Assembly (NCBI GenBank): GCA_964270895.1
Contig: OZ185442.1
DNA length: 64,000 nt
DNA from: Podarcis filfolensis
Taxonomy: Eukaryota
Reading direction: 5' to 3' (one strand)
This document shows positions 16,475 to 61,797 of the stretch, in pieces. Position 1 is the stretch's first letter, and the number at the start of each line of letters is the position of its first letter. Made by a program: the position numbers and the translations under genes. The notes under the pieces were generated by a model. That model saw only the letters and a list, made by a program, of their open reading frames with translations, ran no database searches and had not been told where the DNA came from.

Positions 16475-16526
16475 ATGAACACTGAGAAATACAGGAAGTT
16501 CCTGGATGGACTCAACAACCTGAAAG
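16475..16526 (+). CDS. MACF1: Probable MACF1 alternative first coding exon, plectin-1e-like: MNTEKYRKFLDGLNNLK|(D)
   Basis: 17 codons +1 nt with an upstream in-frame TAA at 16406-16408 and an AAG|GTACAG donor. The phase-1 join gives [11 protein letters not shown], as in plectin 1e (MDPSRAIQNEISSLK-D, recalled). Confidence 0.7.
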
Positions 16527-19500
16527 GTACAGATGCAAGCTCCTTTATTTCTCTCCCGTTGGAGTGTGTGTAGAAAGGAGCAAGGTAGCTGAGCCAGCTC
16601 TGTCGCCAGGCTCAGGAGGGAGCAGAGCCCGTTCTCAGGTGGGCACAGGTGCCTGGGATAGGAAGGAATAAGCTCCCAAAGGCTGGCGACGGACAACAGT
16701 TTTGCAGCCAGTTGACGGTGGTTTGTCAGGCACTTCACTTGACTGGAGAGGGGGGCAGCTGTGCACAAGCGTTCCTTTTGTTCCACGGCTGCCTCTGGTC
16801 AAACAGGCTTTGCATGTTTTTAGGACTCAGTGAAAACTGCAAATCCTTTTGGCCAGTGGTGCAAATGGGATGTGTGTCTGTATCATGAGCAGCAGCAGCA
16901 CCAGTGATTTCCTCTTCAACCTGCCTTCAGCTCTCTGAAGAGCCATTGTCTCCAGCTGGAGACTGGCTTTGTGGGCAGTCAGGCTGGAAGGGAAGCGACT
17001 GTTCTCCTTCCCATTAATCTCTGTCCGCCTCAGGTCGGCTGTTCTGTTGGTGGGGCGGGGGATCGACCCCTGTCCTGCTTTGTTCTTCAAGAGGTAGCTG
17101 GTCCAGCCTTTGTCCTGGCGGTCCCACCTTGTTTCCGGTACCCATTTCTCCCAAGGTGTCTCAGTGATGCATGAGTCAGAGTTTAAACATGAACCTCTTT
17201 CCTGCAATAGCTGAAGGCAATGGCTTTATAGGGACAGGAAAGGATCTAGAAAGCATTTGCTCTTTTACATAAGAAAAACAACTCTCTTTTTTCTTAAAAA
17301 AATGTTGCATTATTGCCATTCCTTGGAGTCCAGAGAGGGCTTTGCTAAATAACAACCTGAGAACTTTGCTTTGCTTCTTCCTGCCCTCTGAATCTACCAT
17401 CCTTGCTAGGTTCTGATTTGCAGAGAAGTTTCCAAGCATTTTCGCTCTGTGTGGTTTTTTTTTGGGGGGGGGATATGGATGGACAGACACGTAAAGCTCT
17501 TGTATGAACCAGGATTGTAGACCGGAGGGAGCAGATGGTGCTATGTGATCCTTTTGTAGCAGGATCATGATGGATGGAGACACTCCTTGATGCTCCAGCC
17601 AAGCTCTCACTTCCCAGCTCCATTTTTTTCCACCTCTTTCCCCCCACCCCACCCCCAGAGGTTGGGAGAGGGGATAAATGTGTCGATGGACATTTGATCA
17701 AGCTCTCTGTGGCCTCTTGAAGCAGGTGCTGGATGGTGGAGAGGGGGGCGCTTGCACAAATGTTCAGTCTGCGCATGCGGTGTGTGGCTAGTGAGATACT
17801 TGGGCATATGCTGAATGGCGGCTTGGCTCAATATGCCTTACAGATATTTTTGCAGCAGGGCAGTCTGTGCCATGCTGGAGATGTTCAGAGCCTTCTCTGT
17901 CAGTTTGAAAAGGCAGAATGATGCAGGAGAATTTGCTGTGCCCAAATGCTAAATGGTCATACTTGAAATACTGCTCCGACATACTTGAAATGGTCATACT
18001 TGAAATACTGCTTATGGCAGGGGGTTCGACTGGCTTATTTGTAGCAGGAAAGGATTTTGGTGGATTCCTAAGACTGATGCTTGTTTTCACCAGGTTATGT
18101 CCAGCCACCCTTTTGGGAAGGTTGCCTTCCCCTTGGACCCACAGCCACATATTTCCCGTGCCCAGTTGTCTGCAAGCCCCTCTGAGCAGCAAAGAGAGAG
18201 GGACAGGAGTAGCTGCAGTGGGAAAGGGTAGAAGCTGATTCTAGGAAAGAGCCATAGCTTGGTGGCATCCCACCAATGTTGCATGCAGATGGTCCTGGGT
18301 TCAGTCCCCACAATTTCCTCCTAAGTCTGAGAAATAGTCCTCTCTTGAGCCCCTAAGCAGCCGCTGAGAGTTGATGTTGTGTCCGACCATCACTTTGAAA
18401 CTCCCTGCCCATTGACACTAGGCAGCCAGTCTTTGTGGTTAAAACATTTTTGGTTAGGCGAGCCTATCCAGACATGTCAATGTCAATATGCTTTAATCTT
18501 TTTTTAAAAAAAACTGTTGTTACTAATGTTTTAAATTGTTTTAAACTGTTTTATTGGTAGTTTTAATATTTGGCATAAAACGCTCAGAGATTTTGCTGCA
18601 ATCAGTTGGTGTCTGAGCTTCCCCAAATGAATAAATAAATCCACCCTGAGCTTTTGGTGGACTTAGAGTCAGATTCCTGGGTGTTGCAGCTTCCTGTGTC
18701 CCTATGGGCAAGGACTTAGAGGGGAATGGGCAGGCAGCTGGGCTCAATGGCTCAAACTTCCTCTGTGTTGGCAAGCAAAGAAGTCTGCTCATCGACTCTT
18801 TCACTGGCTTGAACTGCAGGAGAATATTGTGTCTTGTTGGGGCGTCTCATTAGTCAATGTGTTTTGGCCTAGTTTTCTCTCTCTTTCCTGTTTATTTTCC
18901 TGGCCCCCAGCAGGGCTCCAGAGCTTTCCTGGGGTAGTCCAGTGACCCATTTTGACTTGTCGTGGCCTCTGTTCCTTCTGTTTCCTGTTGGAATAAGGCT
19001 GGTTGGTAATGGCAACTCCAGCGGGGAAGTCTCCCCGAACAAGCCTGTGTTTCAAACACAATCTAAATTTGAAATGGTCGTCCTGGAGCCAGGCTTGTAG
19101 ACAGCTGCTCACCTCATTGCCTCTGTTGATTTAGAAATTGCCTCTAGGTGACCAGGAAGGAGATGTGGAAGACAGTTCTTGTTTACCCTTTTAGGTGACT
19201 GCTGTGCCACAAATGGTTGATATATAGTGTGGGGTGTGGTTTTTTGTGTGGTTTTTTGTGTGGTTTTTTGTTTAAATGGGGCAGTCTTTGACTTGTTTGA
19301 GGCTATAATGGAACCAAAATATGACAGTTTCCTCAAATAAAACAAGTTATTGGAGCTGAGGAAATCAGGAATTGCCTTAAATGGGGACACAGGGGCTAGA
19401 AACAGCTTGGAATCTGCTATTTATTATGATGACTAGTAATAGTAAGTAGTGGCACCAGCAGCAGGAGCTGACGTTTTCTCAGGCTTAAAAGCATTGTTTG

Positions 19501-20023
19501 GGAGAAAGGCACTCCTTTCTCCTTTTGACTATTATACTTACGGTAAGCAATGATCTGCCATGACTCAAATGGGATCCCAGAGAGCTTAAATTCAGCCCTG
19601 GCTGTCCATAATTTTTCTCTGGAAGTTCTCTCAGCTGATCATGATGTTTTGTGTTGCAAAGGTGAGCTGTGTGTTTAGTTTAGCTCAATGCCAAAGGGGC
19701 TGCCCTCTGCCTGTTTTCACATTCCCACCTGGCTCGCTGTCACTTTCATGTTGCCAGACTTAGAAGAGAGGCCTGTGACCTCCTATTCCTGCATTTGCCA
19801 TACAAGAAGAGTTAATCCAGTTCACTTAAATTGGAAGGACTTTGTGTGCGCAGAAAGAGTGTGTCAGAGAAGAGAAAGTTGGGGCTGTGTCCTTCATAGA
19901 TTTTTTTTCCTGTCTCCAACATTTGCAGCTGGTGTTGGGGAATCAAGTGTAAACCAAACTCCTGCATGGCTCAAGTAGTGAAGCAACTGTTTGGAATCAA
20001 GGGCAAGCCTGGAAACATTCTTT

Positions 20024-20026
<3 letters not shown>

Positions 20027-20071
<45 letters not shown>
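20027..20071. repeat. (AC)n microsatellite
   Basis: Direct reading. Confidence 0.95.
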
Positions 20072-20073
<2 letters not shown>

Positions 20074-26163: not shown

Positions 26164-26682
26164 CCAGAGACTACAGAGGTGTGCCAGGAAAGAGGAAGAA
26201 TTCATGTTCCATGAGCTGCAGAAACAGTCTTGTCTAAGCAAAGCTGCATGTTGTGCTAACCTTGTGCCTAAAAAGTCTGCTTAAAACCAGCCACTCTCTG
26301 TCAGCAAAAGCTCTGTGTGCCCCACAAATTCCAGATCATGACCAGGAGGAGAGCATGACTCTCTTCCCTGCCCCCCATTCTCAGTGCCATTTTCCTGCTG
26401 GAAATCACCTCTGAAGGTGTTATTTGCAGCAAACTGCTTTCAAATGACGTGGTTAAAGACAGGAGCTAGGAGGAATTGGCTGCTTGAATCCTGGCCCCGG
26501 GGGCGCCATCAGGCGGCATCTGGGGGTAGGCAGGGCTCAAGATGCCACCTCCAGTCCCCCACTTCCAGTGTTTATTTTCCGTATTTTTGCTTTTTTGCCC
26601 AGTCATGTGTTAATTTCCTTGAATTGGAAGCAGTTGGGGCCGCTCAAGGTGTCTGTATATGATAAGACAGCCTGAGCTATGA

Positions 26683-26738
<56 letters not shown>
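26683..26738. repeat. Compound (CT)n(GT)n microsatellite
   Basis: Direct reading. Confidence 0.95.
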
Positions 26739-28775: not shown

Positions 28776-31700
28776 CGGAATCCATGCAGCGACACAGGCG
28801 GAAGCAATGGTGCTGCTGCAGCTGGATCTGTCTAGCAAAACCAAATGAGAATTCGTTCAGCTGTTCAAATTAGAACTTGGCCAGACACGCGCAGGGTTTT
28901 CATGCTCCACATCTTCCGCGCCAGTCGCTAAAACAGCAAGGAGAATCTCTCTGACAAACCGATTTATTTTATCGCAGCAGGAGGCCTTCAAGGACTACTG
29001 CCCAGGTTCTCAAATGTGAGCTTTTTGTCATGCCAAGTTGCCTTCCTTCTTATTTCAAGGGTCCTCCCATTGTCTCACCATGGCAAGGCCTCTTTTGAGA
29101 GAGGATTGCAGCCTAACAACCCTCAATTTCAGTGCCTCGCCCTCCGCTGGGGAAGTGTGGAGCCTGGCGCTTTAAGCCTGCCGGCCCACCCGTGAGGCCT
29201 GAATGATTGGGGCAGTTAACCTGCAAAGTTGTCACAATGCAGACTGTAGCCATTGTGCGCATGGTGTGTGCATTATTATCTACCATTGACTCAATTGCGC
29301 TGACTAACTCGGCAGTGTAATGCAAATCCAAATAATTGTAAGCCGCCCAGGGTGGCTGGGGAAACCCAGCCAGATGGGTGGGGTATAAATAATAAAATTA
29401 TTATTTATTTCTTATCTGCAGTTGGCCTAGCTACTTGCTCTTCCCTCACATTCCCACAGTGGATTCATTAACAGGATTTGCAAGACTCGAGCCTGTTTGG
29501 GATCCTTCTCCATACAATGTTTGCTTTGGAAGCAAGATCTGTACACTGAGAAGGCCGCCTCCTGCTTCTCTTCCTTACATGATTGCAATCTCTGAGGTCT
29601 ACCAAGAATGACCTCTTGAGTTTACCTTTTCTCAGCATGGCATGTAGAAAGATGATTGCAGGGGAAAAAACCCTGGTGGGGTTTTTTATTTCCTCGGATT
29701 TCTGCAAATTCCTGGAGGGTCAGGGTATCCATGGGTACTAGCCAGGGTGGCTACATTCTGCCGCTGCTGCCAGAGGTACTATGCCCTTGTATACCAGTAG
29801 CTGGGAATTGCGGGGGGGGGGGAGGGGGGCAGAGTGCTGTTCCCTTGGGTCCTCCTTATGGGAGTTGTAGTCCAAAACACCTGGAGGGGCACGTGTCGGC
29901 TGGAAAGGCTGGAGTGCATCAGAGCTGCTCTAGCCACTGTCTCAGAGCAGCTGCTGGACCAGAACAGCATGCATCCACAGGCCCCTCGGAGTGATTTTTG
30001 ACTCACTTGTGTGGTGTTTGTGTTTGTGTTGGAAGTGGGTGGCCTGCCTGCGTGGAAGATGTTACAAAAATACACTCGGAAAAGGCCCAGCATACCAGAA
30101 AAAGACGCAGTGTGGATGGTTCCCACAAGCCTAACATTTTCATATTTCCCATCTCTGCCAAGTAGCCTCTGGGTTTGGTGTTAGAATAACAGGCTTGTTT
30201 GTGAAGACACCGCAGCTTTTGTTCAACTGGCAAAAAGGGCCTTTTTCACTCCCTCATTCAAGGCTGCTTTCTCTCTCTCCCCCCACTCCTCTATTTTTCT
30301 TCTTCTTTCCTGTTTCCTAAGCTGCTGTGGGAAGGTTGGAGAGCGTTTGAAGGGGATTCCTTGAAAGCACCCGGACGCTTGAGAAGAGGGGAATTGAGGG
30401 GGCTCAGTGAAGCAGAAGGATTTATGGGTTCATAAGGTCCCATGCACACCCGAGGCTGCCCCCATACTTCCAATAAAAATCCAGTCCACATGCAGGGGCC
30501 ACATGCAGGGGCTATCCCACCTGTATCAGGGGAAAACAGCAAACGGCCTCCAGAGTCACTGTCCAGTTTGTCCAGGTCTTCAGATGGACACTGAGCCTGC
30601 AGTGAGACACTTCTGTGTTTCACAGAAGTGTACCGGCATATTCGCATAAACATGGGTTGTTGTAGAGCATGGCTGGGCTGCTGACCTTGTGGAGAGGGCT
30701 ACATTTCTTATGGGGTTTCAGCTGCAGGTGGGGCCGGATGCAAAGATGGGTGGCTTTTTCTTGCTTTCTGCCACCTGCATGAGATTAGGCTGGGGGATGG
30801 AGGCTACCAACCCCACCCTCCAGGAGGGTGTGCAGCTGGTGGCCATCTCATGTTTGCCCTCAGCATCTGGGTATTCACAGCTATACTGCCCCTGTCTGTG
30901 GAGGTTCCATTTTATCTGACATCACTAATAGGCAGGGCTTTTTTTCAACTGGAACTCAGTTCTTGCACCTCTTAGGTGGGCACCATTGCCATTATAAGAG
31001 AGCAAGGGAGGTGTTCATAGTGAGTTCCAGAACCTCTTTTTCTAGAAAAACAGCACTGCTAATAGGCAGTTATATCTCTCTCCCTCTCCGTATATCAATC
31101 ACAACCCCTTTTTGATGAAGCTACAGCTGGTCCCTTGGCCTAGTTGTTGTCAGTGAGGATGGTGACCTGGGGCGCTTTCTTGCAGGCGTGTGGCTGTATA
31201 TTAGGGTGGCTTTGCATTGCCTTAAAAGTCCATGGTTGCTTTTTAAGCAAGTTCAAGGGTGGGGAGAAGCTGCTGTATGCAAGCAGCACTGCAGCTGCTC
31301 AATTTGTCCTGCTTTTGGCAATGCTGTGTGCCCACACGGAGCCAAGGGACCCATTCTCCTGGGTCAGGCCCCCCTTTTCCAGCTTATCCTCCTTTTGCCC
31401 TGGTCTCCCAGGTGAGGCAGCATCTCTCCCCCCCCCCCCCCCCCGGTCCTCAGTTGGTTGTGCCTTCATGGGAGGCGCTCCTTCCTTTTCACATAAATCT
31501 AGAAGGGCCTCTGGCCTGCCATCATGTCTGGTGCCCTCCCCCTGGGGAACCCCCACATGCTGGCAGCTTCCAGGGCTCTGCTATAAACAGCGATTAGTTG
31601 CTTGGGGTTCGAGGCCTCTGAGAACTTCACAAAAGGTCTGGCCTCGCTGCCTTTTTTCTCAGGACTTAATTAATTCTCTGTCAGTCTGCACGTCTCTTTT

Positions 31701-36101: not shown

Positions 36102-39100
36102 TATGAGCTTCTGTGGATATATCTCTGCAACCTTTGCCCATTGATGGGGGCTGCTGGGAGTTGTGGTTCAAAACATCTGGAAGGCAAAGAGTTGCTGTAT
36201 CAGGCACTGTGCTGGTAATAGACAGGCAGCACACACTGCTAGGTCTTTGGCTCCTCAGCCTTGGCCTGCCTTAGACTTTGATCTCCATCTACATAATGGG
36301 AATAATAGTTACCAACTTTTACACAGTGGAGGGGAAGCACAATGAAGCTTGCACATGGGACGCCCCGTGTAAACAGAAGTGAGTAGTAAGCCAGGGCTGG
36401 GGGCCAGAAGGAAAGCTGGATGTGTGGTAGGTGTGTTGCAAGAGTTGTATGATCTCAAAAACAATGTCTTGAGGAATACGGAGCACTAAGCCTTGGGGGC
36501 AGGAAGGTGGAGATCCCAAAAGAAGTCTGCTTACCCTCATATCCCCCCCCCACTTTAGAGTAACACAGGGAAACCAGTTGAGAGCACGGCGGTGTCTGAT
36601 ACCCGCACCTAGTTATCTGCAGAGTAGAGAGTGCCCGAGGATTGAAGCAAGTAAGCCAGGCTGCACTATTATTGGTCTTTAACCCTCCAAGTTCACTGGC
36701 TAGATCACCTTGTGGAAAAATCCACCTCATTAACAGGCAGAGATAGTCACTCCTCTTTGAGCCAACTGTGCTTGTTTTGAAAAGGTCCCGAAGGTTTTAA
36801 GTTGTCATCTTACTTTGTGTTCCTCTGATCCCTGGAGGATTATGATGCAGATAAGGTTAATCTCCCCTATTGGATCAAAAGGATACAAAGAGGTACACAC
36901 ACGACTTCAGCCATAACATGCTAAAAAGGTAATTGCTGCTCAGCTGTAGGTCTGCCTCCTTTCTCCTCTGCCTTGATGATACTCAAGAGACTTTGTTCTT
37001 TTAGATCTACTTATTTTGAATTTGGGCAGGATGGTTACAGAAGTGCAATGGTGAAACATGCAGCACCTACTTTCATTGTATAGGCAAAGAACATTAAGAC
37101 TTTCTTAGAATTACTTGCTCTTTTGTAACTTTGCATTCTCAAGAATCACCATTCTAGGAATCTTTTAAAAATGCAAAATCAGATTTGTGTTGCGTTCCGT
37201 TTTCAGGAGAAGTCCCTCCCCACACTATCACACAACCAATGCCCACTGAACTTGGGGAACATCTTGGCTAGTTTTTTGGGAAGGGACTCCCAAATGCATA
37301 TCCCATAGGGGAGTCACAATGTCACTGTCTCCCCTCAAAAGACCTCCTATCCATCCAGCATATGGCTAATTGCGTTCCTAAGCACCATTGTAGATCCATG
37401 ATGAAAAGGAAGCCTCTCCTTTCAGTGTGCAATCAGAATTAATCTTTTGGTGTGAAGTGGCTGCTGAAAAGAGGAATTGACTTGAGCTTTTGAATCCTTG
37501 ATTCCAGTAAGTTCCCCACCAGGGTTCCTCAGAGTTCATATTTGTATGTGAAAAGCCTGTTGGACAGCTGACAGGGTACCGGCCTGTTCCAAGGATTGAT
37601 GTGTGTGTGTGTGTCTCAGGGAGAGAGAGAAAGAAGGAAGGAGAGAGTGTCCTTGTGTGGTGTCTTGAAAAATATTTTTTCTGCTTCTGTATGAGGGTTG
37701 GAAAGGCCTGCTGCCTCTCTGGCTGTTGGAATTGAGAGCCTGTTCGAAACCGATTCTCAGAAAATTCTTTGGGAGTTAAACATTTACCCCTGATGCCCTT
37801 AAGGAGGCTTAAAGTCTGGTGGTTACTCAGAGCTCTCCTGCTCTGCTAGCAAGGGACCCTCATCTCTCTTCTCACTTGTGGTATTCTAATATAAATTCCT
37901 TCTATATTTTGAACTGCTGCAAGCTGTATGGTGTCCTGCCATTGTGTACACCAGCCCTCTGTTTGGGACTACAACTCCCATCAGCCTCAGCCAGCACTGC
38001 CGCATGTTGCTAGGGCTGGTGGGAATTGGAGTAAAAAACACTTGGGGGGCACTTTGCAGAGCTTCCACGCTTTTGCCTGCCATGATGAGTATACTGTTGC
38101 CCTCCTGTTAGTATGACATGCCTGAGCCCCTCCCACTTGTGGTCAGGTACCCTCCTGACACCTGTGTGGTAATCCTTGCCTCCTGTCCCATTTCTGAGTC
38201 TGAGAGGAAAACTGGGGGATTGGCTGCTGCCTTGTCTACGGTTCTAGAGCCTCCAGCCTCACTTTCTAACTTTACCCTGGAGTTGGGGGTATCCCTGGCC
38301 TCAGGGACAAGTGGAAGGTTAGGATCCTGCTGATCACAGCCTGTTGCTTGGTTACCAAGGGCAGTTCCAAATTGTGGACTGCTTAGATATGGGAGCGGAT
38401 CCTTCCCCTGACCACAGCTGTTTGTTTAGATGGGACCCTTTTGGCCAGAAAGAGTAGAAGCCATGAGGGGAGACTTGCTGAAACTGGCATATACTGCTTA
38501 GAGCTGCCTTTCCCAGGCTTGGGGGCCCGGATGTTGGTGGACTACATTTCCCATCAACCCTGATCCTTGGCCATGACAGCTGGTTGCAGATGGGAGTTGT
38601 GGTTCAGCAACATCCAGGGAGCCGAGGTTGGGAATGGTTGGCTCAGGAAGCCTTTTGGCCAGTATCTGTAAACACCTGTGATTCACCTGCAGTGAAAGGC
38701 ATTTCAAAGGGGAGCCGCGAGATGTGACAGCCATGGAAGGAGGGGCGCCTGGGAAGCTGGGTGGAGTCCCCGACTGTCTCTAGAAATGTCATCTTTTCTT
38801 CATGACTTTTCTCAAGGCTGCCGCCTGGGAGCAGGGAGGGCATGCGTGGCTTGATCCATCTCCTGCTGCTTGCCTGTGCTTGCAGGAGGGTGTAGCCCAT
38901 GTGTGTTTGTGCTAAATGCCTTACTGCTGACTGCATAGGCGGGTATATACCCAGAGGCATGGCCAAAAGGTAGAAATCCAGGCGGGTCCTGAGGTTGGCA
39001 TCTGGGTCAGTTCAAGAGGATGATGATAATCCCCACGGCTCAGTGTAATTATTTTAATTAAATAATAATAATTTCGGGAAAGTAAATGACAACTGGAAAA

Positions 39101-43742: not shown

Positions 43743-45004
43743 ATATGCAGTTACCCCATACATTATCAGCACCATACTCCTAACCAACTGAGCTAGAGTA
43801 GACACACAAATGGCTGGATTTGGAGGACACCTGATTGGGGAAAGCTGCATTAGGCAGATTCAGAGTGCAGAGGCCTCTCAGTAACAGCCAGCTATGGTGG
43901 TTAAGTGGAACCTCCAGGTTCAGAGGCAACCTACCTCAGCATTCTAGATGCTCGCTCAAACTGGAGGAGGCTGCTTCTTCCATGCCCTGCTTGTGGGTGC
44001 GTCTGAAAATGGCTGGATTCTGGCCACAGCTAGAGATGGCATGACATTCTTTGGTGGACTATTGGTCTGGTCCTAAAAGATCTTTCTCATGTACTTCCTT
44101 TGCAAGCAAGTTTCAGCCCTGGCTCTTTTCATTTTGGAAATGAAGAAAAAATCATGAAAGGCTATATATACATGGCAATTCAGGTGAGCAGTTTTGCTAA
44201 CCCACAGATACAGTCTTGTAGCCCAACACTTCCTCCGGGACCCTTGGGTAAAAGAACGTAATCATGAGGAGGGGGGCTGGATGAAAGTCTGTGGTAAATC
44301 CACTTCTGGTTATGGGTTCCAGAAACAGGCTTACTACTTTTCCCTTGTGATTTTTTTTAAGGAGTGTTCTTTTACTTTAAAGCAGCCTTTGCCAATCTAG
44401 TGCCTTCCAGATGTGTCAGACTAAAAACCACATCAGCCCCAGCATCATATGGGATCTGGAGGGCACCAGTGGCAAAGGCTGCTTTGAAAGTGCATGCTAT
44501 TTCCTCCCAAAAGAGTGCACTTTTCTCCCCACCCTTAGAACACCCCATTTCATGGCTCTTGCAGCCCCACTGCATCTGTCTGTTTTCAAGCAAAGTCATG
44601 GAACCGTATATTTTGTCCATCAACCTCTCTCTCTGCATTAGTCTCCCTCCCTCAAACAAACTATCCGCTATGCAGCTCTGCATACTGGTCCTGAATACAA
44701 GTGGGTCAACCATGCCTGCACTGCTGGCTTGCGGCTTCTCTGTCTCTTCCCTGCTTGTAGTGATAGGTGATGCTTTTGAGGGTTCTCTCAAGCCCCCACC
44801 CTTCCCATCCTATAAATTGCATGGGTTGTCGTTTGGTGCTTCTGCAGTGCCATCTGGCGGACACTGCAAAGAATGGGACAAAAACAGATCACATGCTTTA
44901 CTTAAAAAGAACCGCCAACAGCAAAACTTGCACCAGATCGTATAGTTGATTATATAAGTTGTGTAGATTTGCATGACTACTTTTGTGCATATCATTGGCC
45001 TCTA

Positions 45005-45040: not shown

Positions 45041-47646
45041 TATTCCGTTAAATTTAGGGGAGTGGAGGGGAAGGAACCTTCCAGGGCATTGTATACCCTT
45101 GGAAATAAAACAAAACAGTGAGAGCATCGCCCACAGACTGTTTTCAAGCATGCCTTCATTACCATAAGGGTTAGGAAGTTGCTTGAAAAAGAGGAAAGCA
45201 AGCTAGGATTCTCAGAAAGCTGGAGTTATTATCCAGTGCTGCAATTAGTAGATTTTCTACAATCTTGTAGAATTGTGGTACCCCTTTCCCGAGCATTACA
45301 CCAGAGAAATGAGAAAAGGTAGGCAGTGCCTTCTTTTGTGTCCAGTTACTATGGACTGATATGTACACAAGCCTTTGAATTTCACATAATTGCACCACCA
45401 GTTTACCAATCCAGTAGGACATTCGTCTGTTCATGACTTCTCACATGTTCCTCCTACTGTGTTAGTCATTTGAGGCATGATGATGATCTGAAAATAATAT
45501 GGAATCAGTGCTCTCACAGTTTACCTAAACTTCCCATACTGCCCTCCTGGAGATGTTTCTTATTTTCCACAGTTAAGTAACTGTCTATCTGCACTACTTC
45601 TTTCTGTGTGGAAGCAGTAGTCTCCGCGGAACATCTGTCCTTGATGAGGCCAAAGGCTGCTGCTGCTGCTCTTCCCGCCATCCCTATTAGATTGCACCAT
45701 TGTCCAGTTTCAGGCTCTCCTTCCTTGGGGACGAGTTTCTGATCTTTTTCTGCTCACATGCGGACCTTAAGACCCTCTGTGTTACTGAAGGTGGGTGTCC
45801 CCTGTGAACAGGTTCAATTTCATGAAAGTTTCTGATAGGGCAATCTGTGTCTCCTGGGATACACAAGCAGCCCATGAAAAGCCTTCTCAACAGCAGCATC
45901 CTTTTGACACAAAGGGACTCCCCCGCCCCCCGCCTTGCTGTTCTGGTTGTACGTTTGGATTTGAACTGACTCTGCAGTGGTAATCTTTGCTAAGCAAGCA
46001 GGTACTTCAGGAACTACTTTGGATTCAGCTTCAGGAGTTTGTGGCTTTGTGCAGTTTTTGGATAACTTGAATGACTGGGTCCGATCCCTGGGGATTATGC
46101 TAGGTGCACTTCTGCACTGATAAAACAAAATGCAAATTTTGCTTCAAGGTGACCTGTATTCTCCCATTGGTACAGATGAAGCTAATTAAGCAGACTGGTG
46201 CTCACTTGCTGGTTTTACATAATCTGATACACTTTTGAGTTCCAGGTGTTCAAAAGGCTAGGGATTCCTTTAGCAAGGACTTGAAAAGATACAGATTTTG
46301 CAGCAAACCAATAGACGAAGAAGCTATTTGGAGTAGCAAAGGCCTTTGTAACTATTCTTCCATTCCTTCTTCTCCCCACTCCCTCTCTAACATTTCACTA
46401 CAAGAGCAATGCCTGTCATTGTAATCAGTGTGAATTACAATGGGGCTGGATCTCAAGCATGTACCTCTAGGATTGGGTCTCCTTCCTCTCCTGCCCCCTC
46501 CGATTGGAATTCCCCATCAGTTAGGCAAAGCTGTGATGGGGCAAGGCAGATCACACTATAATCCAGCATATTCAGGACAATCTTGACTGTTGAACCATAA
46601 TGATAGTGGCAGTGGTGGTGATATAATATCTGACATATATTAGCAGTCCCCCTCTCCCCAAAAAGTAACCCAAAGTGCCTTCCAGCATCAGATGAACATT
46701 AGAACCGAATATTAAAACCTGAACTGTTGCAGGCGCTGCCAGCGCCATAGCTGAGGCTGAACGCATGTGAGCAGTTTGGGCAAAGCCGCCTTATGAGTTT
46801 GCGGCCAAGATTTGCACAGGGGATTCCCCACCTCGCACCCACAACCAATCTGCGATGCCCACTTGCAGAGAGCAGCTTCTCTCAGTGGGAGGGTATTTTC
46901 AGTTCTACAGTTTGGGAAGAATATAAAAAAGCAGGATTCGGGCTGGGAGGAGTGGGAAAAGCTGGTTCTTTGCTTGGTGGACCTGTGCTCAACTGCTGGT
47001 AGCTTCTCACTTCTGTTATAAGGCCCCTGATGCTTTGCAAAGTCACCGAGTGGGGAAAGTGTTACTCACCAGGGAAATGTCGAGTAAGTGTGCAGTCTGG
47101 CCTGACACACACACACACACAGACACACACACACTGGTCTGAGCTGAGCCAGAGGGTGACTCAGCTCTGAGAACGGAAGAGACATCTCTTTAAGAATTGG
47201 CATAAAGAGCTGAGAGTTTTGCAGATGAGAGTTCCACAGTAACGGTCTCTTTTGGGAAATGAATAAACTGTGCATTTGTGCATCTTTTAAAAACTCTGAC
47301 TGGAGCATGTGGCAGTTGTGGCTCATTTGTCTTCCATGCACAGGCTGCCTCTTGAAGCATCTGGCACAGAATTTGAATCCCTTAGAAATGTTTATTTTTG
47401 TTTTCTTGTAAGGTAATGTTCCCTAGCTCTCCTTCTTAGGGGAGGATGGGGCAGGACCATGGACTTACGTGCATGTGGGGGTGAATTGGAACGGGGAGGG
47501 CCTGATTCTCACATAATGCTGTGCCAGAGTTTCTTTAAGCTATGGTTTGTTGAACAAACCACAAGCTGCCCCACAGTTGATCCAACAAACCTTGGCTTGT
47601 GTCTTCAAAGTTTGGTGTGTTTTCCGGCTGCTTTTGTAGCTTGGTA

Positions 47647-50423: not shown

Positions 50424-51689
50424 CTCTGCACATAATTAAAATACCCCGAAGGTCATACAACCTACAATTATTTATTAATTTGTTTAGCAAAATGCCTGTG
50501 GGCAAATGGGCATGTGTGGAGTCGTGTGAGTGAAGGAATGGCTTATATCTTGCAAGGGCACCTGTGTGTGCAGCACATCACTATCTCTGCACATAGATGC
50601 TCATGGCATGTACACACACACTGCCTTGGGAACCTTGGGGCTGTCTACTCACACATGGGACAGCCCAACCCCCTGGATGTCTTTGAAGGGACTTTTCTGA
50701 TCCACCTGATGTGAGGTGGGTGGAGGATGGTGACGGCAGAAACGACCCTTTTTGAAAGTGGGACCTCAGCTTTGGTACACTCTCCCCATAGACACCAAGA
50801 GCATAAGAAGTTTCCTGTTTCTGGATCAGGCCAAAAGCCCAGCTTGTCCATTATTGTGTTTTTACAGAGGCCAACCTGATGCCCACATAGAGCTCGCAAG
50901 CAGGACGTGATGAAATAGCACTTTCGGCAGCATGTCTCAAATGCTGCTGCTGGTACACAAACATGATGGCTAGTAGCCATTGATAACGACCCCCATGGAT
51001 TTGTCTGGCACCAGCTCTTCTGTTTCGTAGTGCCAGGCAAAGTCCTTTCTCTTCCCCAGTTCTTTTTAATGCGTTGGTTTAAATCTGATCTTAACAACCC
51101 AGGTCAAGTCACCCAGCGCCAGCAAACTCCCAAAGCCTTAGGGCTTCACTTTCCCCCCTAGGAGTAAATGGTACTCATTTAGTTATGGGAGAAAGTGAAA
51201 AGGACATCATTGTGATGGGGTCTGTCCTTGTTCTCAGCTCCAGGGGCCATTGAGAACCAAGGCTTTGCCCATTTGCATAGCCACACCCCTCATCTGCATA
51301 GCCCAGCCCTCTTGCCCTCCAGCTGTTTTGGACTCAACTCCCATCAGCCCCAGCCAGCACCTACTGAGGTTTGCAATGCAGTGAACTAAAAAAGCACTGA
51401 GCCAACTGGTCTCTCTTTTCCCCCTCCTATCATCCGGAAGGGCTGTATGGGAGGCTGCTCTTTAGGCAGCCTGTCCTGAGCTAGCAGAATCCCTGCTCTG
51501 CCTTGTCTGTCCTGGCTCCTCAAGCAGTGCCTTCCCTGTTCTCTTCCAAACAAGTCTGCTTGGAGAGTGGGCATTCCAATGGGCTTAGGAATGGAAATTT
51601 AAGAGCATGACGCTCTCTCTCTTGAAGGGGGGGGGGGAGAGGCTGAAGTTGGTTCATTTCATCACGTTGGTGGATGCCAAGGAAAGATG

Positions 51690-52018
51690 TTTGAGTCACC
51701 CGGACGCTCATTTGCTCACTTTCTCTGTCCGGAGTCCACTTGCTCCGTCGGGCATTTTTGTTTTGGAAGCAACAGAGGGCAGGCTGTTTCTCCCCCACCC
51801 CATGGGCTGATGAGAGAGGAAGAGAACCCCCCCCCTCCTTCCAGAGACAGCTCTCTCTCTCCTTTCTCGCTCTCGCTCTCTTTCTCTCCTCTGAACTCTG
51901 TGCCTTTGCTGTTCTCGCCCGCCCTGTTCTGTGTGATGCTGTGTCTGGGTGCTTGCGGCCTCAAGTGAGGAATTTAAAACTCGGGATCTGTGATAACGGC
52001 GCGGAAACCAGGAGGCAA
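51690..52018 (+). promoter_or_regulatory. Putative promoter / 5'UTR of the 1b-like exon
   Basis: Locally CpG-enriched, with a CT-rich tract at about 51850-51890, immediately upstream of the ATG at 52019. Confidence 0.45.
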
Positions 52019-52124
52019 ATGCCCCTTTTGAATGGGACTTTCCTGCCACCCACTGTGTTCATCTTGAGTCATGTTCTTGGAGTTGCTGGGATCTTGTATT
52101 GGACGAAGAGCAGGAGGCAGGAAG
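52019..52124 (+). CDS. MACF1: MACF1 alternative first coding exon, plectin-1b-like signal-anchor N-terminus: MPLLNGTFLPPTVFILSHVLGVAGILYWTKSRRQE|(D)
   Basis: 35 codons +1 nt, A at -3 of the ATG, AAG|GTACTG donor, in frame with the 61736 exon. Closely matches my recollection of the human MACF1 N-terminus MPLLDSSYLPPTIFILTHVLGVAGVLYWKR. Confidence 0.92.
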
Positions 52125-52897
52125 GTACTGTTATTTGAGGACCAAAATGTACTCTCTCTCTCTTTCTGTGTATATGTGTTTGTTCTTCCACCTGACCTTG
52201 TTCTAAGCAGCAGTCCTCTTTTTCTGCTTGATGGCAAGAGGTCAGGAATAGCCCAGAAGCACTGCTGGGTTGGTGATGTCATGGAATATGCAGAAGACTC
52301 TGCTGGACACACATAAGAGAAGCTTCCAGAGGGTTAGACTTGCGGGACTCTTTGTTGCACATAAGAAAGTTTCAGTACTTACTTTAACTGTCAAAGAGCT
52401 CTGGGAATTGTAGTTCTTTGAGGAAACTAAATGAGTTGTCAGTGGACTCAGGTGATGCCCATGACTCAGCCCCTCTGCATGTCACCGGTGTTCATTGGTA
52501 GAAGAGCATTCTGATTTATGCCACGATGACAGTTTCCTAAGTGACAGCACTAGGTGGCTATGTCTCTGGGGCCTTGTGTACATTTCTGCCTCATTCCTGT
52601 GAATGGGGATTTTCAGTCTTACACTTCCTTAACATTCTGGTTTCCACACAATATCCCAGAGCACCATGCAAACCTAAAACTCAGCACTTGAAAAACTCTT
52701 TTTAGCACAAAGGATTAGAGAGCAAAGAAGAACAGGTGCCGCTGGGGAAGAATCAGCATGGCTTCTGCAAAGGAAGATATTGTAGAGCTGGAAATTCAAC
52801 TTCATGTGCAGAGGCAGTGAAAAAGGAAAATTCCATGCTAGGGATAATTCAGAAAGGGGCTGAAATTGAGACAGTTATATAGGAAGGAATGCTTATA

Positions 52898-54412: not shown

Positions 54413-56850
54413 AATTACAGAACCAGCTGATGAGCATTGCTCTGGTTTAACTAAGCCCCGAATAGCAGGATGTGATTTTGTGTCTGTGTTAGGGATGGAC
54501 AGACAGACACAGCTCAGCAGGAGGGCATCTGCTTTGCATACAAAAGGCTTCAGGTTCAATTCTTCTTAGCATTGCCAGTTATAGGGCTGGGAAAGATTCC
54601 TGCCTGAAACCCCGGAGAGCTGCTGGAAGTCAGGTGAATTGGCACAAGGCAGCTTTCTGCATCCCTATGTGTTGTCAGTCTTTTTCTTTCATCAAGTGCA
54701 TGTTTCTGGTTAGTCCATTGCTATAGAACCCATTGAGTACCTGGAGCCCAGTTACCTATCCTGTGTATCGGATCGGAACCTGACTTTCATAAGGTAGCCT
54801 TTGCGGTGTCCAGCTGCAGATCTTGTAATTGCTGGAGGCTTTGCAGCAGCCAGCAGCCTTTCTCAACCTGGTGTCCTCCAGACATTTCAGACTACAATTC
54901 CCATCAGCCCACCACATCACCATGTAGCCATGATGGCTGGGGCAGGTGGAGTTGCAATCCAAAACACCCAGTGGGCACAAGGTTGTAGAAAGCTGCTGTA
55001 AAGAATCTTCCAAAGGGCACAGCTGGGTCCGTGCTTTGCTCTGTTTGAGAAGTGCCTTTGGTTTGTTATTTTTTCCCATTGCCGTCTTTTTGTGCTGAGC
55101 TCCTCCGCTGCCCTGAGCCTCCCTCTCTGCTCCCCCTTCCGTCTGTTAGGCCAGCCCAGGTCACTGACAATAGCAGCTTTGCTGTGGCCTCTGTTCTTGG
55201 CCTTGGTCAGGAATGCCAGACGGTTGGTTGGTTATCTTCTGGATGGGCAAGGGGGGAATGTGGGCAAGGGTGGGACAGCGGGTAGCCAGCCAGTGAGGCA
55301 GCAGCGGGGGCTGCTGAGAGTTGAGCAGTCGGGTGGTAACAGGTTGCTTATCGGAAGCACTCTCTGGGAAAAGATTAAGCCGTTGAAGATAAGCTGGCAA
55401 GACCTTGATGTTGTTGGTGAGAAGGAGCAAGGGACTTATTCTTAGCTCAGTGGATAGGATAGTGTCTCTCTCTCTTTGTGTGTGTGTGTATGTTGGGGGT
55501 GGGAGGGCTAATCTCATTAGACACCAAGATCTACCCAGGAGGAATAAGGCTGGGTGACAGGCTCTTAAGGGAGGAGAAAAAGCATCGGACAGAGTACTCA
55601 TGGAGTTATTTCCTGGGTGGCAGTGAAGGAAGCCAGAAGCTGATGTTTTCTGCTGGGCCTGGTCGCTGCCAGGGTGCTTAAGTGATGCTGGAGCTTTGTG
55701 CTTAACTTGCTGGAAGTGGGGAGCACTCAGCTTGGGTCAAAGAGACTGAAGTGGAGTTATATTTAGAAGAAGAGGAAAAGGAAGATGACTGATAAGCTAG
55801 CCCCCGTTATCTCTGCCGTGGACGCTCCAAACCATTGCCCTCTTCAAATGGCGTAGTCTTCTGCTGAGCTAGTGCTTTTGCAGAGCTGAGCTCTGGAAGT
55901 TTTGGGGACTGTCTTCAGCTTGAGGATGTTTTATTTGTGAAGATGCTGCAGGCCCCCAATGAATGCAGAGAAAGAAGAACAGCCTATTGTTCTGCCTTAG
56001 TGTTTCAGTCCGTCTGGTGACTCTGGGAGTTCACATTAGAACCAGGAGGCAAACAGCCTGGAGCTGCATTGCTGAGTTCTCTTGAGAGAGGTGCTGGCTG
56101 GACCTTCTGACTCCCACATGCTGCTTGCTGCATGGAGGTGGCAACTTGGGTGTGATGGAGTTTTGGCTGGAAGTTGGGATTTTTAGAGAGAAAAAGCTGA
56201 AGAACTGGAAAATTCCTCTTCTGTTCCAAGTCCCTGAGTAGTCGTGAGTTGTCCTTTCCCAATGTGTCTTGGATTTGTACCTCTTGCTCAACCTGAAGAA
56301 GAGAATCTTTTTCTCAGTCTCTTTTCTCTCTTGAGGAGTGGTGGACCTGCTGAATGCTTTTTACATCTATCTTGACCTGATCGCCTCCTTTCTTGAGTGC
56401 AAAGGTGATGGTGGGAATAGGAAGTTTCCACCAAGGACATTGTAGTGACTGAATGAAGTGTAACCCATTCTGGGGTGCGGCAGGATATTGACCAACCTCC
56501 TTGCCGCTGCTGAATCTTCATGCACAGCTGAGGCCTATGCCTGCCTGCCCCTTTGAGGTCTGCTGATGATGTGGCTATTTTGAAATATTTGTGCTGGACC
56601 ACCGGATTATTTTTGTTTTGCTTGTGTCTCAGAGGGTTTTTGCTGTCTCTCCCCAACTATGGAAGACGTTGGCACCTTCTTGCAAAGTGAACCCCTTTCT
56701 CTTTGAAGCCTCTGAGGCTCCCTTCTTTGTGGGACTGTTTGCAGAGATGTTCTGAAGGGAGGCTCATGCGCGTGCGCGCTTTCTTTTGCTCCTGATCACG
56801 AAGGAGGAAGCTGTGGGAGGAGCTGTGGTGAGGAAGCCGGCAGCCAGGGC

Positions 56851-57031
56851 ATGGGGCTAGGAGACCACGCTGAGGATAACAGACTCCAGGGGAAACCCGG
56901 AGTTGGAAGAGCTCTCTTGCAAACCAAGGACTTGATGCCAATGGCGCTGGGCTCTGAGGGGTCCATGTGGCACATCTTCAGAGGGGAGAGGGAGCTGAAC
57001 GCCCACCTCGTGTGCAAGATGTGCTGCTTTG
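56851..57031 (+). CDS. MACF1: Probable MACF1 alternative first coding exon, plectin-1g-like: MGLGDHAEDN...SMWHIFRGERELNAHLVCKMCCF|(D)
   Basis: 60 codons +1 nt, strong Kozak context GGCATGG (alternative ATGs at 56935 and 56941), TTG|GTTAGT donor, phase 1. The last 21 aa align without gaps to the plectin 1g end WLDGGCEPARRGYLYQQLCCV (recalled). Confidence 0.65.
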
Positions 57032-58322
57032 GTTAGTACGGCCTCCTCGTTGGTTACATCTTCCTTGATGGGGGGTGGGGGGGTGGAGTGCGTGGCAGCC
57101 TCATCCTAAGCATGGCTACTCACTCATGGTTACTTCACTTGCTTCCTATAAAGTGTCCTGAGGAGTAAAGCCTGATCGTTCTGACTCATTCATGGGACAT
57201 GCCATCACCTAATATCTTTCTGTTTTCCCTTTCTTTTTTTTAATTCCAACCTTGTAGGAAGAGAATTTGGGGCATCAAAGGAAGGTTTCTGGGGGAAAGG
57301 AAAGGGGGAGCAGAAAGGGCTGTGCTAAGAGCGGAGGCAGCTGCCTTGAGCAAGAGATTTTGGCCACTGATAGAGGAGGGGTGTGGGGGGGGTACAGAAC
57401 TGATTCATAGCTGAGGCACAATTCACCAGAAAGGGGCATCCTGTGCAATGGGTGGAATTGGTGTGACTCTAGTTCACTTAAGCTCAGTGTGACTTGCACA
57501 GGAAAACTTAAAACAGAGGGTTGGGCCTTGACTTCTAATGGGCTTTGCTTTGTAACAAGGGACTATCTTTCCCACACATTTTTGTAACCATTATTTTGTT
57601 GGAGAAACGCATTGCAAAATTCAGAGAAGTGCTAATTTTAAAGGTTAGCCATGTTTCAATTCACTTGTTGTTTTGGGAAGTACAAGTTTGGGAGCTTTGC
57701 ATTAAAATGTGAACTGAACTAAATTCCTCCCCAAGTCATGTAGTAGACACAGTTGTTGTCCTCCCTCCCTCCTTCCCTCCTCAGTCTTTTCTGCTGACTG
57801 GTGAGAATATACTTTCTCCCTCTTCTGAAGCCATAACTAGACGTTGGTTAGTTGATAGAAATGCAACACTAAGTTATGGTGTGATAAGGGAAATTTAATG
57901 TAGCATGGAGATGGTTTTCTTCTGTAAAGGTACGTATTTTCTGTTCTTGGGTGGTTTTTTTGGAATGTTCTTTTTGGGAACCGCGTCCTGCAAGGATGGG
58001 GAGCCTGTGGCCCTCTAGAGACAGGCTGGACTCCAACTCCCATTAGCATGGTTAATGGTCCAGGGATGATGGGAATTGTAGTTCAGCAAAATCTGGAGGG
58101 CTGCAATGTTCACCATCCCTGACTTACATATAGTTTATATTATGTGATAATAAAGTAAACATATATTGGGGATACATATACAAAATCATTATTTATTTTT
58201 TTTAAAAAAATCGATTATATGAGTACTTAAGTGAAATAGTGAAGAGCATATGTTCCTTTATTTCCCCAACCAGTTGCCCCCCAGATGATTCAGAGCACAG
58301 TTCTCAGCAGCCTCTGCCAACA

Positions 58323-59324: not shown

Positions 59325-59711
59325 GGACGCGGGTGGCACTGTGGTCTAAACCACTGAGCCTTGGGCTTGCCGATCAAAAGGTTGGTGGTTCGAATCCCCA
59401 CTACGGGGTGAGCTCCCATTGCTCAGTCCCAGCTCCTGCCAACCTAGCAGTTTGAAAGCACACCAAAAAGTGCAAGTAGATAAATAGGTGCCACTCCAGT
59501 GGGAAGGTAAATGGCGTTTCCTTTCGCTGCTCTGGTGTTGGTGTTCCATTGTGCCAGAAGCGGCTTAGTCATACTGGCCACATGACCCAGAAAAACTGTC
59601 TGCAGAACGGACAAAGGCCGTCTTCCTTGGCCTGTAAAGCGAGATGAGCGCCGCAACCCCAGAGTCGTTCATGACTCGACTTAACTATCAGGGGTCCCCT
59701 TTACCTTTACC
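59325..59711 (+). mobile_element. Sauria SINE, full length
   Basis: A and B boxes and an (ACCTTT)n tail. TSD TTTAA(C/T)CTTACCAG at 59311-59324 and 59712-59725. Confidence 0.92.
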
Positions 59712-60539
59712 TTTAATCTTACCAGTGCAGCCCCCTGAAAATGAAATGAGTCTTGCAGTTATGATGGGAGGAACTGGAGGCACCTTGGCTCTGTGTTTCC
59801 ACAACGTTTCATGGTGATTTTCTTGAAATAGCAAATATATTTTGAGAAGCGTTTTGTAGAACATGGGTGGCTCACCTTTGTTTGACCTGAGAGCAGCTCT
59901 CAAGGTTGGCTGACCCTCATGGTGCTCTTTGTTGAAGTGGCTGTGGCTACTCAACATGCGAATGTCAGTAATAAATAGCCCATCCCTGGAGAGTGATTAG
60001 AATGGGTTGCCCCGGGGGTAGGGGCTCCTTGCTTGCTTTTTAAATCTGCAGATGTTTAAAAATCTATACAAGGCCATTTGAGGAAAAGCCCCATTGATGT
60101 TTTGGCTAGGCCTCCGCAGAAGGAGAGTCCTTGACATGACAGCCTGTGCGCATGAATCACAATAAGTTGTGCTTGCTCCTGGATCTTGATTGCAGAGAGG
60201 CCAAAGGTCAGGGCTGGGTGAATTTGTGCTGGAGATGATAGGACTCAAAAAATAAAAAATAGAGGGGTGGGTGGGGGAGTGTGTGATGGGTTTGTTCCCC
60301 AGAATATGCAGAGTTGTGATGATTCGCACAGGGCACCAATGCCCATGGATCTTTATAGATCAGCTTAAGCAGAGAAAAATAGTAGGTCCCTTCTCAAAGT
60401 ATAAATTAGGCTTCTCCAACCTGGTACCCTCCAGATGTTTTGGATTACAACTCCCATCAGCCCCAATATAATTTAGCTGTGCTGGCTGGAACTGATGGGA
60501 GTTGTAGTCCAAAACATCTGGAATGCACCTGGTTTCATA

Positions 60540-60637
60540 AGGCTGATGGAGTCTCCTTCCTTGGAGGTTTTTAAGCAGAAGTTGGATGGCCATCTGTCAT
60601 GGATGCTTTCCTACTCTACAATTCTATCATTCTGTGA
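60540..60637 (+). mobile_element. CR1 3' fragment, internally deleted
   Basis: GGAGTCTCCTTCCTTGGAGGTTTTTAAGCAGAAGTTGGATGGCCATCTGTC followed by an ATTCTATCATTCTGTG tail. Confidence 0.8.
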
Positions 60638-61479
60638 ACTTGGGCAATGCAAGAGAGAAGAAGGGGAGGCAGGAAAGGGAATTGTTAGAGAGTAACAAGG
60701 AGTGTGTCACTTCCAGTAACCAGGCCAAGATGTGTGGTGTTTTGGCTTTTTCGGGTTTTCGTTTTAATTTTAAATTAGTCTGGAGTCTCATAATCAATGT
60801 TTGTGAGTAGCCTCACAAAAAAAGCACTGCTCATTATTGAGATTAATATGTAGCCTTTGTCCCCTTTCAGGGTCTGTTTGGGGTGTTTATGAGGGAAATA
60901 CTTATATAGCATGAATTTGCTAGTGACGATGGAGTTGGTAAACCTTGGATTTGGTGTGCGGCTTGGCTTCCTTGCTGAAGTTGCCTGGAGCTGTTTGCTC
61001 TGCAAGGGTCCTCTGGTGGTGTCCCCCACCCTACTGCACAATGTGCTCTGGGTTGATCTGGGCTGTGGGGATGGCCCTATGTTTCACACTGAAGTTGGAT
61101 TGAAAACTTGGACTCAAACGGCTTTGATTACCTCCCAAACATTGGGAGGGAGGGAGTTGGCTGGGGGAGGGAGTTGTTTGTAGCACAGAACTGGTGGGCA
61201 TCTGCTCCAAGGTGGGAAGGGTGCTGAGAGCAGAGCCATCACCCCCCACACACTGTGTGTTTTCATTTGAGATGTATGTATAGTCCAGGGTGCTTGGATT
61301 TTTTTCTTTTTTTAAAAAAGCTTCAGGTGTCCTTGGGTTGAGCTTGAGGGCCTAAAATAAATGTTAAATCCCTAAAATCCAATGAACCAAAATACAGTGA
61401 AAGAATAAGCCGCTAATTGCCTGCATTGTTTTAGGCTCTAGAAGGGTAGCTTCTTACAACCGATAAATGCGCTTGGTTT

Positions 61480-61522
61480 ATGTCGTTTATAAAACCTCTG
61501 CGCTCGGGAAAGGCAGCAAAGG
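61480..61522 (+). CDS. Candidate short alternative first exon: MSFIKPLRSGKAAK|(D)
   Basis: 14 codons +1 nt, upstream in-frame TAG at 61447-61449, AGG|GTACAG donor, 213-nt intron to the common exon. Weak Kozak context and only faint resemblance to the plectin 1a end (LAVLRASEGKK). Confidence 0.3.
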
Positions 61523-61735
61523 GTACAGGCTGAGACCCTCGTTCGAGAAAGCAACCTGTGTCTGTGTGTGCATGGTTTGGCCTCTCCCTAAGTGCCCTTA
61601 TATGCATGCATCAGCTCCGAGAAAAGGTTGTGATGCTCCTGCTTGTCACCTGCAACACGAAATGCTCTTTGTTTTTCCAGGTGACTGATTTGCTAACTTA
61701 GGCCTCTCTCTCTCTCTTTCTGCTCTTTTTAACAG

Positions 61736-61797
61736 ATGAACGGGATCGGGTCCAGAAAAAGACTTTCACCAAATGGGTGAATAAGCACCTGATGAAG
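61736..61797 (+). CDS. MACF1: MACF1 common exon, start of calponin-homology domain 1: (D)[20 protein letters not shown]
   Basis: 62-nt exon with branch-like TGCTAAC, a long pyrimidine tract, AACAG acceptor and AAG|GTAAGC donor. It is entered in phase 1. WVNKHLMK matches MACF1 rather than DST (WINQHLMK) or PLEC (WVNKHLIK). Confidence 0.97.

Follow-up and report, generated by a model that had tools for sequence, protein, structure and literature searches.

The DNA analysed here is a stretch of 64,000 nucleotides (the 64-kb window) of contig OZ185442.1 from the lizard Podarcis filfolensis (assembly GCA_964270895.1), and it is the proximal part of the 5′ region of MACF1. The gene is recognised by the MACF1 signature that is read in exon 2 and exon 3 (...HLMK at the junction); the same region reads KAQRH in fragments of the paralogue PLEC and WINQHL in those of the paralogue DST. 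Both splice sites of exon 2 are strong, the acceptor being of the polypyrimidine/AG kind and the donor scoring 11.0 on a position weight matrix (PWM). Four short units, numbered 1 to 4 below, lie 5′ of exon 2 and on the same strand; each of the four starts with an ATG and ends in a GT donor in phase 1. A preliminary description had proposed that these units form a hidden array of alternative first exons colinear with that of the plectin gene PLEC, and had compared their peptides with those of PLEC exons 1e, 1b, 1g and, with more reserve, 1a. The features concerned are the following.

16102..16474, plus strand: block 5′ of unit 1, candidate promoter and 5′ untranslated region (5′UTR), within an alignment with python (16102-16612, 66% identity)
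16475..16526, plus strand: unit 1, a 17-codon first exon with a phase-1 donor, supported by conservation and annotated models
51515..52018, plus strand: block 5′ of unit 2, candidate promoter and 5′UTR, the alignable part beginning at 51515/51539 for skink and gecko and at 51877 for python
52019..52124, plus strand: unit 2, a 35-codon first exon of signal-anchor type, supported by conservation and models, paralogue of PLEC 1b by profile match
56740..56964, plus strand: conserved 5′ region of unit 3, including the stretch read from the 56851 ATG; alignable in skink, python and gecko as part of the block 56740-57043
56965..57031, plus strand: unit 3 in its short form, a first exon of 22 codons with a Cys cluster (C.MCC.) at its end, supported by models and complementary DNA (cDNA); by profile match a paralogue of PLEC 1g and a DST exon
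61321..61479, plus strand: A/T-rich element with a CCAAT motif 5′ of unit 4, conserved in lizards, a putative promoter
61480..61522, plus strand: unit 4, a 14-codon candidate first exon seen in lizards only, where ATG, frame and donor are kept
61736..61797, plus strand: exon 2, the common exon with a phase-1 acceptor (DERDRVQKK), an exact match to annotated tetrapod MACF1 fragments
62546..62635, plus strand: MACF1 exon 3 (start of CH1), identified by a block conserved with python and by its translation

Re-reading of the window confirmed the four ATG-to-GT units and the phase-1 acceptor exon at these coordinates, and each unit, once joined to position 61736, restores the DERDRVQKK reading. Taken by itself, this pattern is no evidence for exons and lies within chance. 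The region 5′ of exon 2 in the window holds 1135 ATG-to-phase-1-GT units with 10 codons or more, 92 of which have a donor score of 5 or more on a simple donor matrix; on the same matrix units 1 to 4 reach 4.6, 4.6, 4.8 and 2.4. Support has therefore to come from beyond the window. The number of such units and their weak donors favour the view that all four are chance open reading frames (ORFs) in an intron, their likeness to plectin being due to picking among many, and it is against this view that the cross-species data have to be read first.

The squamate loci compared were those of python (L001), the skink Lerista (L008) and Gekko kuhli (L009). Python and the window can be aligned in no more than about ten blocks; units 1 to 3 fall in three of them, and exons 2 and 3 in two. 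Blocks shared with skink and gecko likewise contain units 1 to 3, and the loci of these two lizards confirmed units 2 and 3. No counterpart of unit 4 was found in the python locus, where the other elements have these positions:

L001, python MACF1: unit 1 at about 10001; unit 2 at 46680; unit 3 at 52328; exon 2 at 57701

The peptide of unit 1 is identical in the window and python, the underlying DNA showing 5 synonymous and 0 nonsynonymous differences. Unit 2 keeps its frame in skink, gecko and, across an indel of 2 codons, python, and its ratio of nonsynonymous to synonymous differences per site (pN/pS) is 0.00-0.16, while that of unit 3 is 0.21-0.43. These comparisons indicate that units 1 to 3 are under purifying selection. 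Frame and donor of units 1 and 3, to which the preliminary description had attached particular weight, are kept in other sauropsids, for unit 3 from position 56965 onwards.

The extent of unit 3 has to be revised. It had been described as running from 56851 to 57031; its donor and its last 22 codons, starting at the Met-Trp of 56965, are conserved, but the ATG at 56851 is conserved in neither python nor skink. The skink ORF upstream of Met-Trp matches a different frame of the window, which contains stops, and because of this mismatch the stretch 56740-56964 is read as 5′UTR, conserved as DNA and not as coding sequence. The 56851 ATG stands in frame 38 codons 5′ of Met-Trp and would lengthen the lead peptide in this species if a transcript starts further 5′.

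Three protein searches, seeded mainly by exon 2, recovered some 200 short fragments from the N-termini of PLEC, MACF1 and DST. In models of MACF1 from reptiles, birds, mammals, frog, sturgeon and teleosts, peptides of the types of units 1 to 3 stand at the start and are joined to exon 2. The unit 1 type opens a python model (P0042), isoform X2 of the grey seal (P0053) and fish MACF1 (P0062, P0092), and is present in spliced Logan contigs (P0060, mammalian, and P0062). The unit 2 type opens the MACF1 models of pig (P0081), crocodile (P0083), birds (P0089 and P0095), sturgeon (P0077) and many teleosts, and its junction with exon 2 is known from gene models only. The unit 3 type opens MACF1 of tuatara, sea snake, gecko, softshell turtle, turkey, primates, rodents, carnivores, frog and teleosts, as well as a mouse protein derived from a RIKEN cDNA (BAC40890.1/Q8C221; P0203). 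When 188 annotated N-termini were compared with the window, the sense matches in conserved blocks fell on exactly units 1 to 4, and other weak matches were scattered.

Chance ORFs are hard to reconcile with these data: units 1 to 3 coincide with rare conserved blocks under purifying selection, they open models and cDNAs of MACF1 in animals from fish to mammals, and annotated N-termini single out the same four units. Judged by the cross-species comparison, the chance reading is refuted for units 1 to 3, and we regard it overall as highly improbable. The same comparison supports units 1 to 3 as real alternative first exons of MACF1 that are conserved across vertebrates, and we infer that they are used in Podarcis filfolensis too. 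To call the array hidden was an overstatement. The exons are already known in the sense that they open Ensembl and NCBI models in many species and the protein of one RIKEN mouse cDNA, and unit 1 has probably been published. Reviews of MACF1 list a1, a2, a3, 4, b and c and "at least three start sites", and they do not mention a transmembrane, Cys-cluster or 1f-type N-terminus (PMC4914211, PMC3352950); a literature search found no paper that describes a transmembrane or Cys-cluster lead of MACF1.

For the relation to plectin, peptides were aligned by type and gene, and the profiles were compared all against all with hhalign; column shuffles that keep composition (n=150) served as controls. The 1b types of MACF1 and PLEC match at 96.5% (E 1e-9, score 41.0), with a shuffle maximum of 16.2 and 0 of 150 shuffles reaching the score. 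In scans over all Met-to-phase-1-GT units of each locus, the two 1b exons are mutual best matches in 8 of 10 cases. The 1g type of MACF1 matches PLEC 1g at 94.2% (E 1.2e-7, score 26.0; shuffle maximum 19.8, reached by 0/150) and the 1g-like type of DST at 98.1% (E 8.7e-14, score 45.3; shuffle maximum 16.3, again 0/150), and the 1g exons pair in some of the reciprocal scans. A terminal (L/M)CC-x at the splice junction is shared by the 1g types, and C.MCC-x is invariant before the actin-binding domain (ABD) in MACF1, PLEC and DST. The 1f types of the three genes are likewise related (about 97%). The comparison of unit 2 with 1b is thereby borne out by profiles, shuffles and reciprocal scans, and that of unit 3 with 1g by profiles and shuffles.

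Short peptides can come to resemble each other, and units 1 to 3 might be real exons whose likeness to PLEC 1b and 1g arose by convergence, signal anchors being hydrophobic and acylation motifs Cys-bearing. Such an origin would suit the shortness of the peptides, the statement that signal anchors generally share no sequence similarity (PMC2426950) and the lack of significant similarity in the 1e pair. It does not account for the shuffles, which keep composition and never reach the 1b or 1g scores, nor for the alignment of unit 2 with PLEC 1b, in which the central His and the W/Y with its basic flank correspond position by position. The same order of exons in both genes, along with the clearly homologous 1c and 1f, and the presence of a 1g-type exon in DST also speak against convergence, which we consider improbable.

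The order of first exons was read in one further MACF1 locus and in three PLEC loci:

MACF1, window: 1e-position exon 16475; 1b 52019; 1g 56965; unit 4 61480; exon 2 61736
MACF1, Cottoperca (L005): 1c 10001; 1f 23871; 1e-position exon 59693; 1b 81795; 1g 87186; exon 2 89962; all donors G/GT
PLEC, plaice (L006): 1c 10001; 1f 23562; 15-codon unit ending at 44535; exon 1 74698; 1b ending at 85247; 1g-like 89807; 1a 97971; exon 2 100547
PLEC, rattlesnake (L007): 1b, 1g, 1a, exon 2
PLEC, quail (L002): 1g, 1a, exon 2

The plaice unit ending at 44535 is what we take to be 1e, a name given by likeness to the human 1e peptide and not by a tool; exon 1 at 74698 is identified by a match to S10_plectin (E 5.9e-37). 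The PLEC order that the preliminary description had given agrees with the plaice, rattlesnake and quail loci as read (1c, 1f, 1e candidate, 1, 1b, 1g, 1a, exon 2), and the MACF1 order matches the PLEC order rebuilt from these three loci. Unit 3 occupies the slot between 1b and exon 2 (52019 < 56965 < 61736), as does its counterpart in L005, and in the PLEC loci of rattlesnake and quail 1g stands before 1a. The 1g-like exon of plaice PLEC (about 89700-89807) carries an in-frame stop within its terminal Cys motif (...LVYSQM-stop-CA) before a good donor, and may be a decaying exon or an assembly error.

By the types of their leads, the array extends beyond what was first proposed, to 1c- and 1f-like exons in MACF1 and to 1c-, 1f- and 1g-like leads in DST, and DST seems to share the array. 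Motifs of the 1c and 1f types were not found in the window, and those exons must therefore lie upstream of it. Since the order 1c-1f-1e-1b-1g-exon 2 is shared with PLEC, and in part with DST, the array appears to have been inherited from the gene that existed before the paralogues separated; from the paralogy of 1b and 1g together with the shared order, it is very probably older than the PLEC/MACF1 duplication, as had been suggested.

Several fragments illustrate the spread of the lead types. A 1g-type lead (...AHLVTLMCCM) opens DST fragments of teleosts and a caecilian (P0164-P0166, P0170, P0171, P0174, P0176), and other DST fragments have 1f- and 1c-type leads (P0168; P0175, P0178). A hagfish fragment has a 1c-type lead, and in shot fragments of Lepidoptera the part before the DERD exon closes with a 1f-like motif, ...QVYEENLTKFK (P0161, P0197, P0198). 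These fragments hint that 1c goes back at least to the first vertebrates and 1f beyond them.

The position of unit 1 in this scheme is less straightforward. It agrees with PLEC 1e in slot, between 1f and 1b (L005 compared with L006), and in size, and it has a counterpart in the fish MACF1 array (L005, 59693). As a statement of homology, the label 1e-like is not borne out: hhalign gives 0.25% with a score of 5.7, which 31/150 column shuffles reach, and the two exons are not reciprocal best matches in the scans over loci. Judged by these comparisons, the link of unit 1 to PLEC 1e is one of position and size only. Unit 1 could be an unrelated first exon, or correspond to another PLEC exon such as 1d, and lie between 1f and 1b by chance; the same account takes it to be the lead already known from ACF7 isoform 1 (MACF1a1). 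The profile result, the unpaired scans and the published ABD coordinates all suit this account. It has to reckon with the identical array slot in both genes, with the similar size (15 versus 17-18 codons) and with a weak ungapped, C-anchored similarity to the plaice 1e candidate that exceeds shuffles (p 0.001-0.017, from a single PLEC 1e sequence). We give it even odds. The ABD of ACF7 isoform 1 has been placed at residues 17-245 (PMC2175090), which agrees with a lead of 17 residues. Unit 1 therefore probably forms the N-terminus of that isoform, an identification made from domain position.

Unit 4 lies 214 nt 5′ of exon 2. Its proposed likeness to PLEC 1a did not hold up: hhalign gives 0.09% with a score of 4.8, reached by 124/150 shuffles, and in local-alignment scans the two never pair. 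With 14 residues, unit 4 does not have the C-terminal motif of PLEC 1a (...(E/D)(D/E)NLY.AVLRASEGKK; 1a length 32-45 residues). Counterparts were sought in the python, marmot and fish loci and were absent, the Cottoperca locus L005 included; a unit 4-type N-terminus was met in only one of 246 retrieved fragments, the Sphaerodactylus model P0148, which opens with this peptide.

Within lizards the picture is different. The skink Lerista and Gekko kuhli keep the ATG, the 14-codon frame and a G/GTAYA donor with no indels, and their pN/pS, for which few sites are available, is 0.24-0.45; the window and Gekko differ by about 6.6 synonymous changes on 9.5 sites and by 5.4 nonsynonymous changes on 32.5 sites. 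The A/T-rich element with its CCAAT motif (about 61340-61420, 60-140 nt 5′ of unit 4) is nearly identical in the window, skink and Gekko, and is not alignable in python. These data make unit 4 a candidate first exon restricted to lizards.

The same region may instead be a lizard-conserved regulatory element in the intron before exon 2, with an incidental open frame and GT, the gecko model being an artefact of gene prediction. The whole of 61321-61735 is conserved in lizards, and the part 5′ of the ATG more so than the ORF; to this are added the absence from python, marmot and fish, the single model among 246 fragments and a donor PWM of 2.4, the weakest of the four. Two runs which are only guessed to be RNA are ambiguous and are not counted as evidence: X14 holds the entire 61300-61522 as far as same-species DNA runs do (word share 0.62, equal), and X4 (0.38) fits an unspliced contig around exon 2. 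The ATG, indel-free frame and donor kept in three lizard lineages and the mostly synonymous changes between window and Gekko are what a regulatory element leaves unexplained. On balance we lean slightly towards this element, and hold the use of unit 4 as an exon to be somewhat less likely than not.

We propose that MACF1, like PLEC, is transcribed from several promoters, putatively a separate one for each short coding first exon. Each first exon ends in phase 1 and, on splicing to the common exon 2, would put a different short peptide before the ABD; following the plectin model, this lead peptide would address the protein. Each of the four units is preceded by a conserved upstream block, and the CpG observed/expected ratio is slightly raised (0.35-0.37 versus a median of 0.21). 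That MACF1 has such an arrangement, and that the array is shared with PLEC and older than the paralogues, has in our estimate a probability of roughly 85%.

A number of points weigh against this arrangement. The donor scores of the four units are mediocre, their start-codon contexts, as read from the sequence, look weak, and a CpG-island search of the window found none. Many of the supporting models are automatic predictions, and the splice support, from Logan contigs and mouse cDNA, comes from other species and not from this lizard. Profile and scan comparisons give no sequence link between unit 1 and PLEC 1e, and the 1e label in plaice was itself given after the human exon and not by a tool. 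Finally, the order of tetrapod PLEC 5′ of 1b could not be read in the gap-rich alligator locus L004.

The leads of units 2 and 3 have properties that suggest particular destinations. The hydrophobic segment of unit 2 has a Kyte-Doolittle (KD) mean of 1.51 over 23 residues, and its C-flank carries a net charge of +2. In plectin, the first exon dictates localisation (PMC8468861), and the 37-residue lead of plectin 1b is a signal anchor of the mitochondrial outer membrane that combines moderate hydrophobicity with a positive C-flank (PMC2426950, PMC8468861; KD of mouse P1b 1.49, PMC2426950). By analogy, a 1b-type lead with its hydrophobic segment of about 20 residues, conserved central His and basic C-flank would serve as a signal anchor and tether a membrane-bound MACF1 isoform to an organelle, much as plectin 1b is held at the outer membrane of mitochondria. 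For the 1g type, S-acylation is suggested because the invariant C.MCC-x directly adjoins the ABD in all three paralogues; dystonin leads have been reported with myristoylation or palmitoylation sites (bioRxiv 10.1101/122010). Membrane targeting and acylation of MACF1 leads are predicted on these analogies.

A wider proposal follows the same line. The ancestor of PLEC, MACF1 and DST would have had an ordered array of at least four to five address first exons (1c, 1f, 1e-position, 1b, 1g). All jawed vertebrates would hence possess two MACF1 isoforms of which we found no study in the literature, one of 1b type anchored in a membrane (mitochondria or endoplasmic reticulum, ER) and one S-acylated at C.MCC, and lizards an extra first exon. 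We hold this set of statements to be a little better than an even bet.

The leads of plectin and dystonin decide location (mitochondria, hemidesmosomes, ER/nuclear envelope) and also the kind of disease that follows the loss of a lead. MACF1 is usually discussed with three N-terminal forms. If a plectin 1b-type lead is present throughout the vertebrates, organelles are predicted to be tethered directly to the microtubule/actin system, and a Cys-cluster lead conserved in PLEC, MACF1 and DST predicts a lipid-anchored form. Such leads are relevant to variants in small exons, to isoform-specific knockouts and to knockout designs that assume one start. The shared order would date the promoter and first-exon array before the paralogue split and make it a clean case of an alternative-promoter array that survived gene duplication.

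Beyond the units, five further blocks of the window are alignable with python:

13107-13340: conserved block, alignable with python, stops in every frame
26564-26655: conserved block, alignable with python, stops in every frame
30022-30342: conserved block, alignable with python, stops in every frame
37402-37594: conserved block, alignable with python, stops in every frame
55148-55457: conserved block, alignable with python and, at 76-79% identity, with skink and gecko, stops in every frame

Because of these stops, the blocks probably represent enhancers, or else exons without coding function, in the 5′ region of MACF1.

Public names of the retrieved fragments are often wrong, as seen in P0042, P0092/P0136/P0139, P0059, P0109 and P0052. 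Python MACF1 is called "calmin-like", MACF1 of Haplochromis and a caecilian "plectin-like", chicken PLEC 1a "MACF1-like X24" and a PLEC-type 1f fragment of croaker "Dystonin". Some leads are odd. A marmot MACF1 model opens with MNVRAP (L003, 10001-10018), which looks like a guess of the predictor, the upstream exons being more than 10 kb away; Crotalus adamanteus P0085 has an odd lead of 20 residues, and Pongo PLEC P0143 one that reads MDRYSMEELIQLGQ. The leads of these three have no counterpart in the window and may be predictor artefacts or lineage-specific first exons.

The arrangement can be compared with several known systems. Drosophila Shot, with N-termini A-D, resembles it in its alternative promoters and in different leads before or within the ABD, and lepidopteran shot has the 1f-like motif; Shot differs in that no 1b- or 1g-type lead occurs among the few insect fragments retrieved. 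The published MACF1/ACF7 forms a1, a2 and a3 (Bernier 1996) are alternative 5′ ends of the same gene. Unit 1 probably supplies the lead of isoform 1, and the lead of the other full-ABD isoform is probably encoded by the 1c-type exon, which is not part of the window; for the published set, no transmembrane, Cys-cluster or 1f-type lead is mentioned in the reviews (PMC4914211, PMC3352950). DST/BPAG1 is a spectraplakin paralogue with alternative leads, for which 1c-, 1f- and 1g-type leads were found in fragments; among the leads of its N-terminal isoforms 1, 2 and 3 are a short one that modulates actin, one that spans a membrane and one that has myristoylation/palmitoylation sites (PMC3352950; bioRxiv 10.1101/122010).

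PLEC, with first exons 1 and 1a-1j, is the closest parallel. The MACF1 loci read here differ from it in showing neither an exon 1 (S10_plectin) nor a 1a type and in a 1e match that is positional, and some MACF1 orthologues of 1b type are more hydrophobic than plectin 1b (KD up to 1.97), which could favour the ER. In both genes, short phase-1 coding first exons, presumably with promoters of their own, are joined to a homologous DERDRVQKK exon, and the 1c, 1f, 1b and 1g types are common to the two and stand in the same order. The likeness is greatest for 1b: unit 2 and the plectin 1b lead are of nearly the same length (35 versus 37 residues), and both place one moderately hydrophobic segment, with a central His and an aromatic and basic C-flank, directly before the ABD.

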